Shown here one piece after another: positions 50,363 to 63,900 of a DNA stretch of 64,000 nucleotides (position 1 is the first letter of the stretch; each line of letters starts with the position of its first letter). The notes beneath the pieces were generated by a model. That model saw only the letters and a list, made by a program, of their open reading frames with translations, had not been told where the DNA came from and made no database searches. The translations under genes were made by a program, and so were the position numbers. Location of the stretch: the IMG/VR virus record IMGVR_UViG_3300032288_004964, positions 186,001 to 250,000 of that record; one strand, given 5' to 3'.

Positions 50363-50450
50363 GGAGAAATGGCAGAGTGGTCGATTGCGGCAGTCTTGAA
50401 AACTGTTGAACCGTGAGGTTCCTGGGGTTCGAATCCCTATTTCTCCGCCA
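50363..50450 (+). tRNA. tRNA-Ser(UGA), canonical type II
   Basis: GGAGAAA/TTTCTCC acceptor, CT-TGA-AA loop, long variable arm, TTCGAAT T-loop, G73 and encoded CCA. Confidence 0.95.
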
Positions 50451-58455: not shown

Positions 58456-58535
58456 TAAGGGTGTTAGTATAATACGCAAAACTTAATTATGATAAGCGCT
58501 TCCCATCTCGAAGGATAAAATCATAACCCTTTTTT
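58456..58535 (+). ncRNA. Candidate stand-alone small RNA of about 80 nt
   Basis: Starts about 7 nt after the -7 element; 5' AAGGG pairs with 3' CCCTT, TTATGAT pairs with ATCATAA, ends in a T-run. Confidence 0.45.
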
Positions 58536-58643
58536 GAAAAAAAATTAAAAAATATTAGGTAGATATAAAACTTTTATCTATATTTGTATAAAATAAGAAA
58601 AAAATAACAAAAGAGAGAATAATTTTTTAATATATAAGAAATA

Positions 58644-58739
58644 ATGACAACAATTCGCACACATAAACATTTTAGTAAATCGAGTAAGTGGTTTAGTCTC
58701 CACGGGTTCGGTACTAATAGCGTATTGTTTAAATTTTAA
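58644..58739 (+). promoter_or_regulatory. His/Phe/Trp(/Lys)-containing leader peptide MTTIRTHKHFSKSSKWFSLHGFGTNSVLFKF
   Basis: 31-aa ORF after TATATTTG (58579-86) and TAATATATA (58628-36), upstream of a terminator and tRNA-His/Phe/His/Trp. Confidence 0.75.
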
Positions 58740-58774
58740 GTATGATAAAATTATAAATTGACAATATTCAAATT

Positions 58775-58810
58775 AAGTCCGAACTAAAAAGTTCGGACTT
58801 TTTTGTTTTT
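58775..58810 (+). terminator. Intrinsic terminator (attenuator) directly upstream of the first tRNA
   Basis: AAGTCCGAACT-AAAA-AGTTCGGACTT perfect 11-bp stem plus TTTTGTTTTT, 4 nt before tRNA-His. Confidence 0.85.
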
Positions 58811-58814
58811 ATAT

Positions 58815-58906
58815 GGTATCGTTAATGTTAGCGGTTAGTGTTGAGAAATCAACCAGCATATGGCTCTGTGAAAGCCAAGGGATGGATTCGAATTCCATAC
58901 GATACC
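58815..58906 (+). tRNA. tRNA-His(GUG) with G-1 and a hairpin insertion in the D-loop
   Basis: GGTATCGT/ACGATACC, TGGCT-CTGTGAA-AGCCA, ATGGA-TTCGAAT-TCCAT; D-loop contains GTTGA-GAAA-TCAAC. Confidence 0.85.
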
Positions 58907-58911
58907 CAAAA

Positions 58912-58987
58912 GGAACCTAAGCTAATCAGGTGAAAGCACTAGACTGAAAATCTAGGGAGCCCGGATCGATACCGGGAGGTTCCACCA
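58912..58987 (+). tRNA. tRNA-Phe(GAA)
   Basis: GGAACCT/AGGTTCC, CTAGA-CTGAAAA-TCTAG, CCCGG-ATCGATA-CCGGG, encoded ACCA. Confidence 0.92.
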
Positions 58988-58993
58988 AAATAT

Positions 58994-59067
58994 GGTGTGT
59001 GTAGCTCAATCGGTAGAGCGTTGGTTTGTGGAGCCAAAGGCAGCGGGATCGTAACCCGTCACACACC
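58994..59067 (+). tRNA. tRNA-His(GUG), second copy
   Basis: GGTGTGTG/CACACACC (G-1:C73), GCTC/GAGC D-stem, TTGGT-TTGTGGA-GCCAA, GCGGG-ATCGTAA-CCCGT. Confidence 0.9.
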
Positions 59068-59185
59068 CTGTAAGGATGGTAATCCCCTACTTTGAGTGAA
59101 AAGTAACGATGTGACGACAATCACAGAAGAGTGAAAAGTAACAAAAAAAGTAAAATTGTACTCCTCTCTTGTCGGAGAGGTAAAT

Positions 59186-59256
59186 ACGTCATACAGACAA
59201 GGTGTCGGTCAGGTCTCCAAAACCTCGATGGCTGGGTTCGATTCCTGGATGGCGTG
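59186..59256 (+). tRNA. tRNA-Trp(CCA)
   Basis: ACGTCAT/ATGGCGT acceptor, AGGT-CTCCAAA-ACCT, CTGGG-TTCGATT-CCTGG, G73. Confidence 0.85.
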
Positions 59257-59262
59257 CAAAAA

Positions 59263-59307
59263 ATGAAATATAAAAAAATGAAAACTAAAATGAAATATAA
59301 ACGATAG
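59263..59307 (+). promoter_or_regulatory. Lys-rich mini-ORF MKYKKMKTKMKYKR followed by an 11-bp hairpin, upstream of three tRNA-Lys genes
   Basis: 7 AAA codons in 14; stop TAG overlaps GGCAACGGTTC-ATAC-GGATCGTTGCC (59307-59332). Confidence 0.45.
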
Positions 59308-59345
59308 GCAACGGTTCATACGGATCGTTGCCCAAACAAGACAAT

Positions 59346-59418
59346 GATTCCGTAGCTCAATTGGTGGAGCTTCTGGCTTTTAACCAGAAGGTTGTGGGTT
59401 CAAACCCCACCGGGATCA
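59346..59418 (+). tRNA. tRNA-Lys(UUU), canonical type I
   Basis: GATTCCG/CGGGATC, TCTGG-CTTTTAA-CCAGA, GTGGG-TTCAAAC-CCCAC. Confidence 0.92.
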
Positions 59419-59427
59419 CTAAAAATA

Positions 59428-59512
59428 GATCCTGTCGCTTAGCGGCTATAGCAACTGGCTTTTAACCAGTAGAGAGAAATCTCAACCGTGGGTTCGAGTC
59501 CCACCAGGATCA
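59428..59512 (+). tRNA. tRNA-Lys(UUU) with long variable arm
   Basis: GATCCTG/CAGGATC, ACTGG-CTTTTAA-CCAGT, 17-nt variable region A-GAGA-GAAA-TCTC-AACC. Confidence 0.88.
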
Positions 59513-59517
59513 CTAAA

Positions 59518-59598
59518 GCTTTCGTCGCTTAGTGGCTATAGCAACTGGCTCTTAACCAGTCGAGAAATCAACCGTGGGTTCGAGTCCCACCGAAAGCA
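59518..59598 (+). tRNA. tRNA-Lys(CUU) with extended variable arm
   Basis: GCTTTCG/CGAAAGC, ACTGG-CTCTTAA-CCAGT, 13-nt variable region C-GA-GAAA-TC-AACC. Confidence 0.88.
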
Positions 59599-59607
59599 CA
59601 AATATAT

Positions 59608-59737
59608 GGGGAGTTAGCTCAGTGGTAGAGTATATATAACCTCTTTTGAAATTTTACCTCACAAGAGTGTTGATTAAAAGAGTTACTTCGTTTGAATTGA
59701 AATCAAAAGGTCATAGGTTCGAATCCTATACTCCCCG
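59608..59737 (+). tRNA. Interrupted tRNA-like gene of uncertain identity, with a 58-nt insertion between the D-arm and anticodon arm
   Basis: GGGGAGT/ACTCCCC acceptor, GCTC-AGTGGTA-GAGT D-arm, ATAGG-TTCGAAT-CCTAT T-arm, TTTGA-ATTGAAA-TCAAA arm. Confidence 0.6.
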
Positions 59738-59756
59738 CAAAAAAGAAAAATAAATT

Positions 59757-59831
59757 ATGAAAAATATTAATACATCAAAGTCGTCAAGTAGTCGCTCGTC
59801 AAGAATGAGTGAGATTCGATTGTATTCATAA
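59757..59831 (+). promoter_or_regulatory. Ser/Arg-rich leader peptide MKNINTSKSSSSRSSRMSEIRLYS
   Basis: 24 aa with 9 Ser and 3 Arg codons, upstream of a terminator and tRNA-Arg plus three tRNA-Ser. Confidence 0.8.
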
Positions 59832-59850
59832 TAGTCAGAAGATATTTATG

Positions 59851-59888
59851 AAACCCTCGAATCTAATGATTTGAGGGTTTTTTATTTT
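59851..59888 (+). terminator. Intrinsic terminator (attenuator) directly upstream of tRNA-Arg
   Basis: AAACCCTCGAATC-TAAT-GATTTGAGGGTTT 13-bp stem (one G-U) plus TTTATTTT. Confidence 0.85.
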
Positions 59889-59893
59889 AATAT

Positions 59894-59967
59894 GGTTCCA
59901 TCGTTCAACTGGATAGGACACTCGGCTACGAACCGAGAGATTGGGGATTCGAATTCCTCTGGAACTA
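59894..59967 (+). tRNA. tRNA-Arg(ACG)
   Basis: GGTTCCA/TGGAACT, CTCGG-CTACGAA-CCGAG, GGGGA-TTCGAAT-TCCTC. Confidence 0.92.
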
Positions 59968-59972
59968 CAAAA

Positions 59973-60059
59973 GGAAAAGTAACTTAGCCGGCGCTAAGCA
60001 CAGTCTTGAAAACTGCTGGTACCTACGGGTATGGGGATCGACACCTCACTTTTTCGCCA
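59973..60059 (+). tRNA. tRNA-Ser(UGA), atypical (6-bp D-stem, can fold 8/4)
   Basis: GGAAAAGT/ACTTTTTC, CTTAGC-CGGC-GCTAAG, CAGT-CTTGAAA-ACTG, long variable arm, GCCA end. Confidence 0.85.
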
Positions 60060-60062
60060 AAT

Positions 60063-60148
60063 GGAGAGTAATCTAGTCTGGTGACTAGCACCGCCTGCTA
60101 AGCGTGTGGTACGTTTAATCGTATGGAGTTCAATTCTTCTACTCTCCG
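60063..60148 (+). tRNA. tRNA-Ser(GCU), 8/4 cloverleaf
   Basis: GGAGAGTA/TACTCTCC 8-bp acceptor, GGAG-TTCAATT-CTTC 4-bp T-stem, CTAGTC-TGGT-GACTAG D-arm, CT-GCT-AA loop. Confidence 0.85.
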
Positions 60149-60153
60149 CAAAA

Positions 60154-60239
60154 GGAAGATAATCTAGTCTGGTGACTAGCCACGCCTGGAAAGCGTTGGG
60201 TGCGTTCAATCGCATGGGATTCGATTTCTCTATCTTCCG
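60154..60239 (+). tRNA. tRNA-Ser(GGA), 8/4 cloverleaf
   Basis: GGAAGATA/TATCTTCC 8-bp acceptor, GGGA-TTCGATT-TCTC 4-bp T-stem, same D-arm, CT-GGA-AA loop. Confidence 0.85.
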
Positions 60240-60242
60240 CAA

Positions 60243-60539
60243 ATGGTAGCAATAGTTAAAATAAAAATTACATACTTTAGAAAGTCAGCAAGTGCTGAAG
60301 ATGGTAGTATTATTTGGGTTTATAAAACTAAAGATGAATCATTACATAACGGTAGTGGAATAAGTGAATCAGCTTTAGACAGAAGTGGTTATAAATTAAT
60401 GAAATATAATAGTGATTTAGAACAATATGCAATTGACTTATCATTTAATGGTAAAAAAGATATAATTTATTCATCAATTGAAAGTGAAATTAGACCTTTA
60501 TTAAGAAACAAATTATTAACAGAATTATTAGAATATTAA
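60243..60539 (+). CDS. Hypothetical protein with C-terminal RNKLLTELL motif
   Basis: 98 aa starting just after the last tRNA. Confidence 0.5.
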   Translation: MVAIVKIKITYFRKSASAEDGSIIWVYKTKDESLHNGSGISESALDRSGYKLMKYNSDLEQYAIDLSFNGKKDIIYSSIESEIRPLLRNKLLTELLEY

Positions 60540-60540
60540 A

Positions 60541-60852
60541 ATGGAAACAATATATTTAAGACATAGAAGAGGTTCTACCTCATTTGAAGGAACTTTGAGT
60601 TTACTTCAAGATTTATTAACATCTAGATTACTTCCTGGATATAGAAGAATTTGGGTACAAGGTAGTAACTCAGGTAGAGCAAATTTAGTATTTACTATTT
60701 TTCAAGATGGTAGAGATTATAGAATGGAGTTTTTAACTATTTCAAGTTTTAGACAATGGAGACCTGACGGTGACATTGAAACAGAAATTAGATTAATTGA
60801 AGAATTGATTGATAGATTAAAATCGGATATTTTATCAAAAATTATAGAATAA
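60541..60852 (+). CDS. Hypothetical protein
   Basis: 103 aa. Confidence 0.5.
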   Translation: METIYLRHRRGSTSFEGTLSLLQDLLTSRLLPGYRRIWVQGSNSGRANLVFTIFQDGRDYRMEFLTISSFRQWRPDGDIETEIRLIEELIDRLKSDILSKIIE

Positions 60853-60958
60853 AGAAAGGATAAATGATATATAGAATTATGAAAGTCATAAAATATATCA
60901 TTTATCCCTTTGTTTATTATATTCAATGTAGAATTGAATCTAGAAAGAACTTTTAAAA

Positions 60959-63900
60959 CTAATCATATACTCTTATTTCAATTGATGCTCCCATGAGGCC
61001 GTCAACTAATACATTAAAATTGAAATAAGTAGCTAATAATATTTGAGATGTATAAACTGCCGGTACAACTGTTCTATCAGGTGCTGCAGTATTAGTAATA
61101 AAAACAACACATTTAGTTGGATCAAACAACACATTTGTTGCTTGATAGACACCAGTTGATACATAGTCCCATGTTGGATTAAATCCAAGTGTATTTTTAA
61201 AAACCTGTGTTGTTGTTAATGATGATGTAACACCATATCCATTACCAATTAGATTGGCAACATATACTTTATATCCATTGGATAAATTAGATGATGCTGT
61301 CCAAGTACCAACACCATTAGTATCAGATACTAAAACATAACCATCTGATTGTGTTGTATCTTCTAATCTAAATGCTCCTGATTGTGTAGCATAAACATGC
61401 AATTTAGCAGTAGATGATGCTGTTCCTATACCCACTTGACCATTAAATACATATTTATGTAGAGTACCAGATTCTCCAAAATTAAATTCATTATCTTGTG
61501 TAGTTATAGAATTATATCCAATTGCCCAAGAGTTATTATGTGATGACACAGCATTTCTACCTATTGCTACACCTCTAACACTTGAGTTAACAGTCGATGA
61601 TCTACCAATTGCTATACCATCTGTTGTACCTGAAACAATATTTGAAAATAAACCAACCGCTATACCATCATCAGATGAGACTACACCAGACCCAATAGCA
61701 ATAGCTCCACCATTTCCAGAGTCATTAAGTGTATTACCATTACCTATTGATATATTAGGTGCTCCAAATCCTTGACTCATCTTAATAGCTGTATAAGATC
61801 CAATATTATATGAACTAGAAAGTCCTGATAATTTAATATTACCACTTACTTCTAATTTTTCGGAAGGAGTTGTGGTTCCAATTCCAACATTTGAGCCAGT
61901 TACATAAATAGAACTTGTTGATGAAAGTGTTGTAGATGATGTATAATAAGGCACATAATTAGTACTTCCTGATAATGAAGTGCTTGATGTTGCTATCAAT
62001 AATCCATCAACACTTACTGCTACAAGACAAGAAACTGATGATGTCATAGATGTTATAATGATATCATTAGCATGAGCCGTATATTGTCTACTTGCGGTTA
62101 TGTTAGATCCTAAAATAGAAGATCCTGTCATACCATTTGTAGTATTATTACATCCACCAATTATAGAACCAAATGGTGCATTTGAAGTATTACAATAACC
62201 CCCACCTATAGCAGAATAAGATGAGCAATATCCAGAAATTGTATTTTGTTGACCACCTCCTATTGTTGAAAATGATGAATTAGTACCTGATATTGTATTT
62301 GCTATACCACCTCCTATTGTTGAATTAATTGAAGAATACCCAGAGATTGTATTTGAATTACCACCATTTATAGTTGAGTGATACGAATAATAACCTGAGA
62401 TTGTATTTTGTTGACCACCACCTATATTTGAGTTATTTGAATATTGACCACTTATTGAGTTTAATGATCCACCATTTATAGTTGAGTTGTATGAGTTGAA
62501 TCCAGATATTGTATTTTGTTGACCACCTCCTACTGTTGAACTATATGAATTAAATCCAGATATTGTATTTAATGTACCACCGCTTATAGTTGATCTATAT
62601 GAATTTGTACCAGATATTACGTTTTGAACACCTCCGCTTATAGTTGAGCAATGTGAATAAGTACCACATATTTTGTTTAAGCGTCCGCCTCCTATTGTTG
62701 AATCTATTGAGCAGTATCCAGATATTTCGTTTTGTCTACCACCAGATATAGTTGATTGATGAGAGAATTGACCTGAGATTGTATTTTGACATCCACCACT
62801 TATAGTTGAAGAGTTACTAGTAGCTCCAGAGATAATATTACAAGAACCTCCACTTATTGTTGAATAATATGAAATATTTCCAGAGATTAAATTACAATAT
62901 CCACCGCTTATAGTTGAAATAGTAGAAGTATTACCAGAGATTGTATTAAGTTTACCACCACCTATAAATGATTGATATGAGTAAAGACCAGAAACTATAT
63001 TATAATAACCACCACTTATAGTTGAAAAACATGAATTGGTACCAGAAATTGAATTAGATCTACCACCGCTTATAGTTGAATATTCCGAATTAATTCCAGA
63101 TATTATATTGGCGTTTCCTCCTCCTATTGCTGAAAAAAATGAGTTAGAACCAGAGATTGTATTACAAGAACCTCCTCCTATTGTCGAATTATCTGAATTA
63201 GGACCAGATATTGTGTTCGTCTGTCCACCGGATATAGTAGAGTAATATGAATTAATTCCAGAAATTGTATTATCACATCCACCACTTATAGTTGATTGAT
63301 ATGAATTTGTACCTGAAATTTTATTTAATTGACCACCAGATATAGTGGAATAATAAGAAGATTTACCAGAGATTGTATTAGTACTACCACCACCTATAGC
63401 TGAGTAATATGAACATTCTCCAGAGATTGTATTTGTTAGACCACCACTTATTGTAGATCTATATGAATTTGTACCTGAAATTATATTATTATAACCCCCA
63501 CCTATAGTAGAAGAATCTGAATTATATCCTGATATTGTATTAGTACCACCACCACTTATAGTTGATTGATATGAATAACAACCAGAGATTGTATTAGTAC
63601 TACCACCACTTATAGTTGATTTTTGTGAGTAAAAACCAGAGATTGTATTAGTACTACCACCACTTATAGTTGATTTTTGTGAATAATATCCAGATATTGT
63701 ATTTTGCTGACCACCTCCTATAGTTGATAAGCACGCACTGTAGTATGATGAAACTGTATTACAACATCCACCACTTATAGTTGATAAACATGAACTCTCT
63801 ATACAATTACAATAACCACCACTTATAGTTGAACAATTTGAGCTAGATATATAATTAAAATAACCACCACTTATAGTTGATCTATATGAATAAGAGCAGA

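Follow-up and report, generated by a model that had tools for sequence, protein, structure and literature searches.

A tRNA-like element in a phage tRNA cluster with a probable Ro60-binding module at its D stem/anticodon hinge

An interrupted cloverleaf at the end of a tRNA cluster

The stretch analyzed here, hereafter the window, comprises 64,000 nucleotides (positions 186001-250000) of the 385,333-bp virus record IMGVR_UViG_3300032288_004964, which has a G+C content of 28.7% and is ~95% complete. Positions 59608-59737 on the + strand of the window contain a tRNA-like element, the candidate, whose acceptor, D, anticodon-like and T arms are perfect but which is interrupted by a 58-nt hairpin (59633-59690). 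The candidate is the final RNA in a tRNA cluster that runs between two strong terminators on the + strand (58775-58800 and 59850-59881). It is probably a YrlA-type Y RNA of unpermuted topology, with a Ro60-binding module placed at the hinge between the D stem (position 26) and the anticodon-like hairpin. The insert most likely represents the module through which bacterial and phage Y RNAs bind Ro60, with Ro60 binding, processing and function predicted from sequence comparison. The arms, the insert, the UGA loop and the discriminator G73 all read as described in the initial annotation (Table 1).

The native sequence does not form the contiguous cloverleaf of a canonical tRNA. ARAGORN makes no tRNA call on 59608-59737, and the Rfam tRNA model (RF00005) gives only a partial match (59680-59733, 30.6 bits). 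The minimum-free-energy fold reproduces the outer arms and the insert hairpin, with a modest z score of -2.0. Exact exon borders cannot be fixed because one T is common to both, and three plausible junctions were therefore used for in-silico deletion of the insert. Each of them yields an ARAGORN tRNA-Ser(UGA) of 73-74 nt with a class-I body, in agreement with the earlier reading of a UGA (Ser) anticodon on a body with a short variable arm. Joining GAG to CG gives a perfect GCTC/GAGC D stem plus G26.

Read mapping over 1.7 kb reveals the locus, with small variations, in four other freshwater metagenomes. Strain variants were seen among these DNA metagenomes, and no allele lacking the insert was found. 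The sole 'skip' joint in the reads (59630->59708, with 19 other letters between) belongs to a different tRNA that shares the D and T arms. All four metagenomes carry A59661G; the P1 loop is therefore GCAA, a GNRA tetraloop. Metagenome X4 additionally shows a 2-nt length variation in the joining strand (59633-59640).

Table 1. Features of the tRNA-like element, in window coordinates
Feature	Position	Strand	Pairing or other support
Acceptor stem, 5' strand GGGGAGT	59608-59614	+	7 of 7 pairs with ACTCCCC at 59730-59736
D arm GCTC-AGTGGTA-GAGT with G10-U25 wobble, then A59632	59617-59631	+	Invariant across three orthologs, G-U included
A/U-rich joining strand TATATAAC, tRNA body to helix P2	59633-59640	+	Fits family consensus UAA(A/C)(A/G)U(A/U)N
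Helix P2, 5' strand CTCTTTTGA	59641-59649	+	Forms 9 bp (one of them G-U) with 59674-59682
U-rich junction strand J2/1, AATTTTA	59650-59656	+	Equivalent to the family's conserved ..UUUUCUC / ..UGUUCC strand
Helix P1 and cap CCTC-ACAA-GAG(T)G, 4 bp, bulged U59668	59657-59669	+	
5'-strand junction motif UGUUGAUU (TTGA junction within), presumed Ro60-contact strand	59668-59675	+	Counterpart of UGGUGAUU, UGGUGAAG, UGCCGUAG and UAGCAAUG in relatives
Helix P2, 3' strand TTAAAAGAG, core AAAAGAG	59676-59682 (core)	+	Pairing, fold, family covariation
Family signature UUACU-UCG; with G59682, GUUACUUCG	59683-59690	+	Its UUAC is equivalent to the YUAY conserved in YrlA
Hairpin resembling an anticodon arm, TTTGA-ATTGAAA-TCAAA, with UGA in the loop (YrlA nomenclature: 'V' hairpin)	59691-59707	+	One compensatory pair in ortholog L095
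AGGTC, linking anticodon-like arm to T arm	after 59707	+	
T arm ATAGG-TTCGAAT-CCTAT	59713-59729	+	Partial Rfam tRNA match; three compensatory pairs among orthologs
Acceptor 3' strand ACTCCCC and discriminator G73 (59737); CCA not encoded	59730-59737	+	

A recurrent module and its conservation

The insert terminates in the 9-mer GTTACTTCG, which occurs at four module sites in the 385-kb genome with the same surroundings. Used as a query against the genome, the element itself matched a further copy of its 3' part at a distance of 17.5 kb. Genome positions 257309-257445 (L005 7309-7445) hold a circularly permuted tRNA-like unit of YrlA type that carries the signature; in it, a leader is followed by the anticodon-like hairpin, the T arm and the 3' strand of the acceptor, then by an 11-nt linker, the 5' acceptor strand, the D arm and a trailer. 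Its anticodon-like loop reads UUC, and that of its ortholog in LR745206.1 reads GCA with a compensated stem change. The unit at 263149-263270 (L002 1493-1612) has a D/anticodon/T body without an acceptor stem, the module standing in its place. This Yrn1-type unit (263.1-263.3 kb) has the loop UCU, with UAA or CAA in relatives. Over 35 nt, the candidate and the 3' half of this unit's module agree at 89%, and strand J2/1 is nearly identical in the two; the unit's junction motif is UGGUGAUU, from which the candidate's UGUUGAUU deviates by G->U at 59670. The 'anticodon' varies freely between orthologs of the 257.3-kb and 263.2-kb units.

The family extends well beyond this genome. The pattern GTTACTTCG-N15-45-GGTTCRAWTCC, scanned in IMG/VR and in bacterial genome contigs, was found in at least 120 contigs of each. 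Under a strict rule, and among the matches listed, 54 of 135 viral and 57 of 136 bacterial instances are permuted, and ~19 viral instances are unpermuted like the candidate; P1 in the latter is typically capped by GNRA or UUCG tetraloops. Both helices of the module are supported by a comparison of leader and trailer in 43 permuted units, in which flanks of the same unit (cognate) were set against non-cognate flanks. The cognate mean is 6.35 bp versus 4.34 for P2, which directly precedes UUACU (p=1.6e-13), and 7.88 bp versus 5.98 for the outer helix P1 (p=7.5e-11). RNAalifold on alignment A1 likewise recovers the T arm, the closed acceptor, the D arm and P2, the last with 13-21 compensatory sequences per pair.

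The strands between the helices are conserved as well. They comprise a lineage-dependent 5'-strand motif (UGGUGAAG, UGCCGUAG, UGCGCAGG or UAGCAAUG), a U-rich 3' strand (..UGUUCC / ..UUUUCUC), an A-rich strand that follows the 5' half of the tRNA, where the permuted relatives show the joining-strand consensus UAA(A/C)(A/G)U(A/U)N, and the invariant UUACU-UCG. The anticodon-like hairpin has a 7-nt loop in about half of the 256 relatives listed, with U33 in 81% and R37 in 92%. These loops resemble many anticodon loops, most commonly GUU, and also those of Lys, His and Asp types. Half-profiles searched with nhmmer (leader and trailer, signature excluded) were too insensitive, missing even the permuted copy of the same genome. 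On the minus strand of the bacterial contig L247 (2642-2732), the two acceptor strands of a YrlA-like unit are joined without a linker, such that a single RNase P cut would yield a mature 5' end together with a 3' end at the discriminator. The hairpin after UCG is truncated in this unit, which gave the top Rfam YrlA score seen (54.9 bits, under the gathering score).

Automatic parsing of P1 and P2 in the unpermuted copies was noisy, and these copies were parsed by eye and tested with a covariance model. This model, R1, was trained on 14 unpermuted modules from outside the window (leave-one-out). It matches the candidate at 59625-59690 with 32.3 bits (E 2.6e-5), the next-best match in the 64-kb window reaching 13 bits. 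The MAFFT alignment A2 mis-registers P2 in some rows, and R1 was restricted to 6 base pairs, which makes its score conservative.

Two orthologs of the candidate were found in other phage contigs, L260 (a 281-kb phage, 94% complete) and L095. Both lie in tRNA clusters, and L260 shares the candidate's synteny (Lys, element, Arg(ACG), Ser x3); downstream of the L095 ortholog lies a second, hairpin-type element. Every tRNA helix is 100% paired in all three orthologs, with six compensatory pairs (two in the acceptor stem, one in the anticodon-like stem and three in the T stem), a covariation that no shuffle reached. The two acceptor changes affect positions 6 and 7 in L260 and L095, and the variant also occurs in metagenomes X4 and X9. 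P1 has 4 bp capped by ACAA (GCAA in the metagenomes) in the candidate versus 6 bp and GAAA in L260, with the same bulged U, and the discriminator of L095 is A73 rather than G73. Because the helices are paired throughout, the changes are compensatory and P1 is restructured yet still paired, the comparison indicates that the candidate is a selected, structured RNA and not a decayed gene. The initial annotation had taken the preserved outer arms as an argument against simple decay, and the orthologs bear this out. It had also named random divergence among relatives as the mark of a pseudo-tRNA and called for uninterrupted versions: the relatives show compensatory change instead, and both orthologs keep the insert.

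Relation to Ro60-associated RNAs and alternative explanations

The phage encodes a Ro60/Rsr ortholog of 483 amino acids with TROVE and vWA domains (genome 112963-114414; L255 916-2364). Directly upstream of this gene (~112532-112598; L255 ~482-548) stands a bare YrlB-like hairpin with GUUACUUCG, followed ~60 nt beyond by a second, degenerate AUACUUCG hairpin. Neighborhood analysis of the family supports the link: a TROVE/Ro60 homolog lies inside 67 of the 120 viral and 83 of the 120 bacterial loci listed (150 of 240; loci of ~7-8 kb), an association of gene and signature beyond chance because the gene is so rare. Two GUUACUUCA elements directly follow the Ro gene of crAss001, and four elements precede that of Gordonia phage Trax, one of them a permuted tRNA-like unit; these Ro-adjoining elements carry GTTACTTC(A/C). 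The Rfam YrlA model scores 30-55 bits on the permuted relatives (gathering score 69) and is the only recurrent match, albeit sub-threshold.

In YrlA (Rfam RF02553), as described by Chen et al. 2014, the Ro60 stem bears the motif GNCGAAN0-1G on its 5' strand, a conserved YUAY opens the hairpin ahead of the T arm, and the T and D arms and acceptor-like stem are near-invariant (PMC4201824). The candidate resembles this RNA in its YUAY (here UUAC, 59683-86), which leads into the UCG hairpin and then the T arm, as in all relatives; its putative Ro60 stem likewise has a large internal loop, and the 5'-strand motif there would be a divergent form of GNCGAA. The junction motifs of these relatives appear to correspond to the YrlA motif GNCGAAN0-1G (PMC4201824). 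In its tRNA-like portion, the candidate has T and D arms of canonical form and an acceptor-like stem of 7 bp, and both groups occur in phages as well as in many bacterial phyla, with a link to TROVE genes. The YrlA layout is exactly that of the permuted 257.3-kb copy in this genome. The differences lie mainly in connectivity. YrlA ends in the Ro60 stem and closes its acceptor as a hairpin, a circular permutation, whereas the candidate has free acceptor ends and a capped Ro60 stem; moreover, the Ro gene lies within 4 kb of YrlA but 131 kb from the candidate, which is unscored by the Rfam model and has a divergent junction motif. Because the connectivity of ends in the Ro stem and a closed acceptor (RF02553 at least 69 bits) is not found here, we file the candidate as a topological variant and not as a standard YrlA member. 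In three dimensions it should equal YrlA with the chain break shifted from the Ro stem to the acceptor end.

Other Ro60 partners share parts of this architecture. D. radiodurans Yrn1 has D-like, anticodon-like and T arms in tRNA order, with the Ro stem at the acceptor position (PMC4201824). The normal arm order is common to Yrn1 and the candidate, and the 263.1-263.3-kb element has the Yrn1 layout; however, the Ro60 stem replaces the acceptor in Yrn1, while the candidate keeps a full acceptor and bears the module at the D/anticodon hinge. The Ro60 of Thermus phage phiLo binds the phage Y-like RNAs Yrl1 and Yrl2 and forms a ternary complex with host PNPase (2025; PMC12135203). Phage-encoded Ro60, phage Y-like RNAs and a stem-bulge-stem with a CGAA motif are thus common ground, but the phiLo RNAs are plain stem-bulge-stem structures adjoining the Ro gene, for which no complete cloverleaf has been described.

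Several observations weigh against assigning the candidate to the Y RNAs. Its Ro60 gene is ~131 kb away, whereas the distance from YrlA to rsr is at most ~4 kb in the known cases. The L260 genome, at 281 kb and 94% completeness, gave no TROVE match, and the close relative LR745206.1 has Ro60 (81% identity), yet the element is missing at the syntenic site. The junction motif UGUUGAUU differs from GNCGAA(N)G and likewise from UGGUGAUU, the family form, and P1 has just 4 bp, so that Ro60 binding by the candidate could be weak. The Rfam YrlA model gives no match anywhere in the window even at E<=1; this is expected because the connectivity has changed, but it means that membership rests on the custom model R1. 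Finally, a search for sequencing runs holding the locus returned DNA metagenomes and no RNA run.

If the candidate is a Y RNA, a plausible course of events can be outlined. Judged by its position between two strong terminators, it would be transcribed as the last RNA of the tRNA operon. If it matures as YrlA does in M. smegmatis, it would be trimmed by RNase P and at the 3' end, and would receive CCA in the manner of a tRNA. The insert would be retained and would recruit the phage Ro60 ortholog or host Rsr. The tRNA-shaped part may stabilize the RNA, tether Ro60 to a tRNA-recognizing partner, or both. Published Ro60-Y RNA-PNPase complexes make PNPase a possible partner, and other tRNA-binding machinery is also conceivable.

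The initial annotation had offered three readings, namely a spliced intron, a decoy tRNA and a tRNA-scaffolded regulatory RNA. The latter two are essentially supported by the resemblance of the insert to the Ro60 module and by the Ro60 gene of the phage, and the intron is the least supported of the three. In that reading, the insert is a true intervening sequence, cleaved and ligated by a small ribozyme or by host or phage enzymes to give a 73-74-nt class-I tRNA with anticodon UGA, and the permuted relatives circularize before opening by RNase P/Z. It was first entertained because the same flanks surround circularly permuted tRNA-like genes, and became a minor rival when the TROVE link appeared. 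The canonical cloverleaf obtained by in-silico removal, with the perfect D stem and G26 of the GAG+CG join, speaks for it, as do the seemingly authentic anticodon loops of the family. A one-piece tRNA from the permuted relatives would require positions 27 and 28 to be joined, and conserved unpaired nucleotides stand exactly at both borders, UCG being kept as tRNA 28-30 or as U8-N9-G10 according to context. The enzymes are absent, however: neither a tRNA splicing endonuclease (PF01974) nor RtcB (PF01139) is encoded in the genome. The introns, permuted genes and split tRNA genes of Archaea and red algae are processed at a bulge-helix-bulge (BHB) motif, which is cut by EndA-family enzymes and joined by RtcB. 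Such genes do resemble the present family in having insertions away from 37/38, a circularly permuted order and a short linker between acceptor strands. The BHB arrangement (3-nt bulge, 4-bp helix, 3-nt bulge, with EndA and an RtcB-type ligase) is nevertheless lacking here, where the border is an asymmetric loop (8 nt versus 1 nt) beside a 4-bp AGTA/TACT pairing and the flanks are sequence-conserved and Ro60-linked. At 58 nt the insert is, as previously argued, far too short for a group I intron, and no ribozyme, group I or other intron family of Rfam matched at E<=1 in 58500-61500 or in 12 related loci. All three orthologs keep GAGU + UCG, which leaves one surplus nucleotide under the junction rule of the family, and literature searches on such splicing and on phage tRNA genes in permuted form found nothing. 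Ro60 genes accompany the module, and M. smegmatis YrlA remains Rsr-bound as two unligated halves with its module not removed (PMC4201824). Splicing is thus very unlikely.

The candidate could instead be a working tRNA that retains an extra arm at the 26/44 hinge, comparable to a class-II long variable arm (recognized together with G73 by seryl-tRNA synthetase), and that decodes UCA/UCN without Ro60. Free acceptor ends, G73, the UGA triplet and canonical D and T loops fit this explanation, as does its place beside the Arg/Ser tRNA block in two phages, in a genome rich in unusual extra arms (long-variable-arm Lys, Glu, Asn and Thr). Yet the arm bears the signature of the Ro60 module and is not an arbitrary helix, L095 has A73, and the genome already holds a tRNA-Ser(UGA) at 50363-50450 and a Sec-like Ser(UGA) at 59973-60055. 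A 58-nt arm on the 5' side of the hinge is not known from decoding tRNAs, and we regard this role, too, as very improbable. A decoy or sponge for host defenses that target tRNAs (anticodon nucleases and the like) or for modifying enzymes, with the module as a mere stabilizing clamp and Ro60 dispensable, would suit the mimicry of many anticodon loops in the family, with GUU the most frequent besides Lys, His and Asp types, and the absence of a TROVE gene from some module-bearing phages. As the link to Ro60 genes far exceeds chance, a decoy of this kind is highly improbable, although it mainly concerns downstream function and is compatible with Ro60 binding. The least likely origin is a dead tRNA gene broken by an inserted fragment, or a chance likeness. 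The missing ARAGORN call, the partial Rfam match and a fold z of just -2 would agree with decay, but the acceptor, anticodon-like and T stems carry compensatory changes, P1 is restructured but paired, synteny is conserved, four other metagenomes show no disruptive changes, and the R1 match is significant.

A YrlA-type Y RNA of unpermuted topology is therefore the preferred assignment, and one unlikely extension of it deserves mention. The candidate may be a chargeable Ro60 carrier competent for the tRNA pathway, and perhaps a prokaryotic or viral counterpart of vault RNA. Human vtRNA1-1, 1-2 and 1-3 contain ..UAGCUCAGCGGUUACUUCG.. (..AGCUCAGCGGUUACUUCG..) followed by the T-arm-like GGUUCGAGACC, and their ends are paired; the GGUUACUUCG box of vault RNA stands after the D-arm-like AGCUCAGCGG and before GGUUCGAGACC, and the vault RNA partner TEP1 carries a TROVE domain, as Ro60 does (PMC10087102). 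The idea arises because paired ends, a D-arm-like box A, GGUUACUUCG, a central hairpin, a T-arm-like box B and TROVE partners are common to the two. Vault RNA has the same 9-mer, element order and unpermuted topology as the candidate, a lead that consists of just 9 nt of identity and the box A/B resemblance. If true, it would imply a common tRNA-derived ancestry of Ro60-bound and TEP1-bound RNAs.

tRNA-mimicking Y RNAs have been known as a kind since 2014, in forms whose acceptor is closed or replaced and whose tRNA-like domain has no established job. What is new here is a complete unpermuted cloverleaf with free ends and an anticodon-like loop, bearing the presumed Ro60 module as a capped hairpin at the hinge, located within phage tRNA operons and kept between huge phages; this connectivity is absent from the 2014 description of YrlA, from Rfam and from the papers searched. 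The form raises the question of whether Ro60 is tethered to RNase P, the CCA enzyme, synthetases, EF-Tu/ribosome or PNPase, and whether such RNAs allow phages to commandeer host RNA decay or to weaken defenses directed at tRNA. Combined with a T arm, the GUUACUUC signature points to hundreds of Y-like RNAs that lack annotation in phage and bacterial genomes and that are missed by the Rfam YrlA model and skipped or miscalled by tRNA finders. Cultured examples bearing the signature include crAss001, Gordonia phage Trax, Chryseobacterium, Streptomyces and Paenibacillus.

Neighboring and other RNA features

The tRNA complement of this phage is unusual in further respects. Class-II tRNA bodies are normally limited to Ser, Leu and Tyr in bacteria. 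Here, long-variable-arm tRNAs of 81-87 nt with Lys (UUU, CUU), Glu, Asn and Thr anticodons occur in the window (59428-59513, 59518-59599) and elsewhere in the genome (254993-255079, 262501-262587, 263270-263350), and every one of them adjoins an isoacceptor of normal length. Three sequences missed by ARAGORN, at window positions 59973-60055, 60062-60148 and 60154-60238, match the Rfam tRNA-Sec model with 40.9, 51.3 and 50.0 bits. They have long acceptors, 6-bp D stems and the Ser anticodons UGA, GCU and GGA, and represent an allo-tRNA-like or Sec-like fold serving serine. A homologous block is present in LR745206.1 and L260.

A 24-codon open reading frame rich in Ser and Arg (MKNINTSKSSSSRSSRMSEIRLYS; window 59758-59832) precedes the strong terminator at 59850-59881 and is kept in LR745206.1. 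It lies directly upstream of tRNA-Arg(ACG) and three tRNA-Ser genes and gives a weak match to the Rfam His_leader family. Judging by this arrangement, reading frame and terminator look like a leader-peptide attenuator of Arg/Ser tRNA expression.

Two more tRNA-like sequences in the window receive no ARAGORN call, and the GUUACUUC signature is absent from both. In the one at 58816-58910 the acceptor and T arm are well formed, the loop reads GUG, and ~12 extra nt (GAGAAATCAACC) separate the D and anticodon arms; in the other, at 59185-59256, the loop reads CCA (Trp) and the D region is irregular. Elsewhere in the genome, a GOLLD RNA (Rfam RF02032, 270 bits) adjoins tRNA genes at 282430-282837 (L006 14430-14837). 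A tRNA with anticodon CUA, a TAG suppressor labeled 'Pyl' by ARAGORN, is encoded at 370132-370204 and raises the possibility of TAG recoding in part of the phage.

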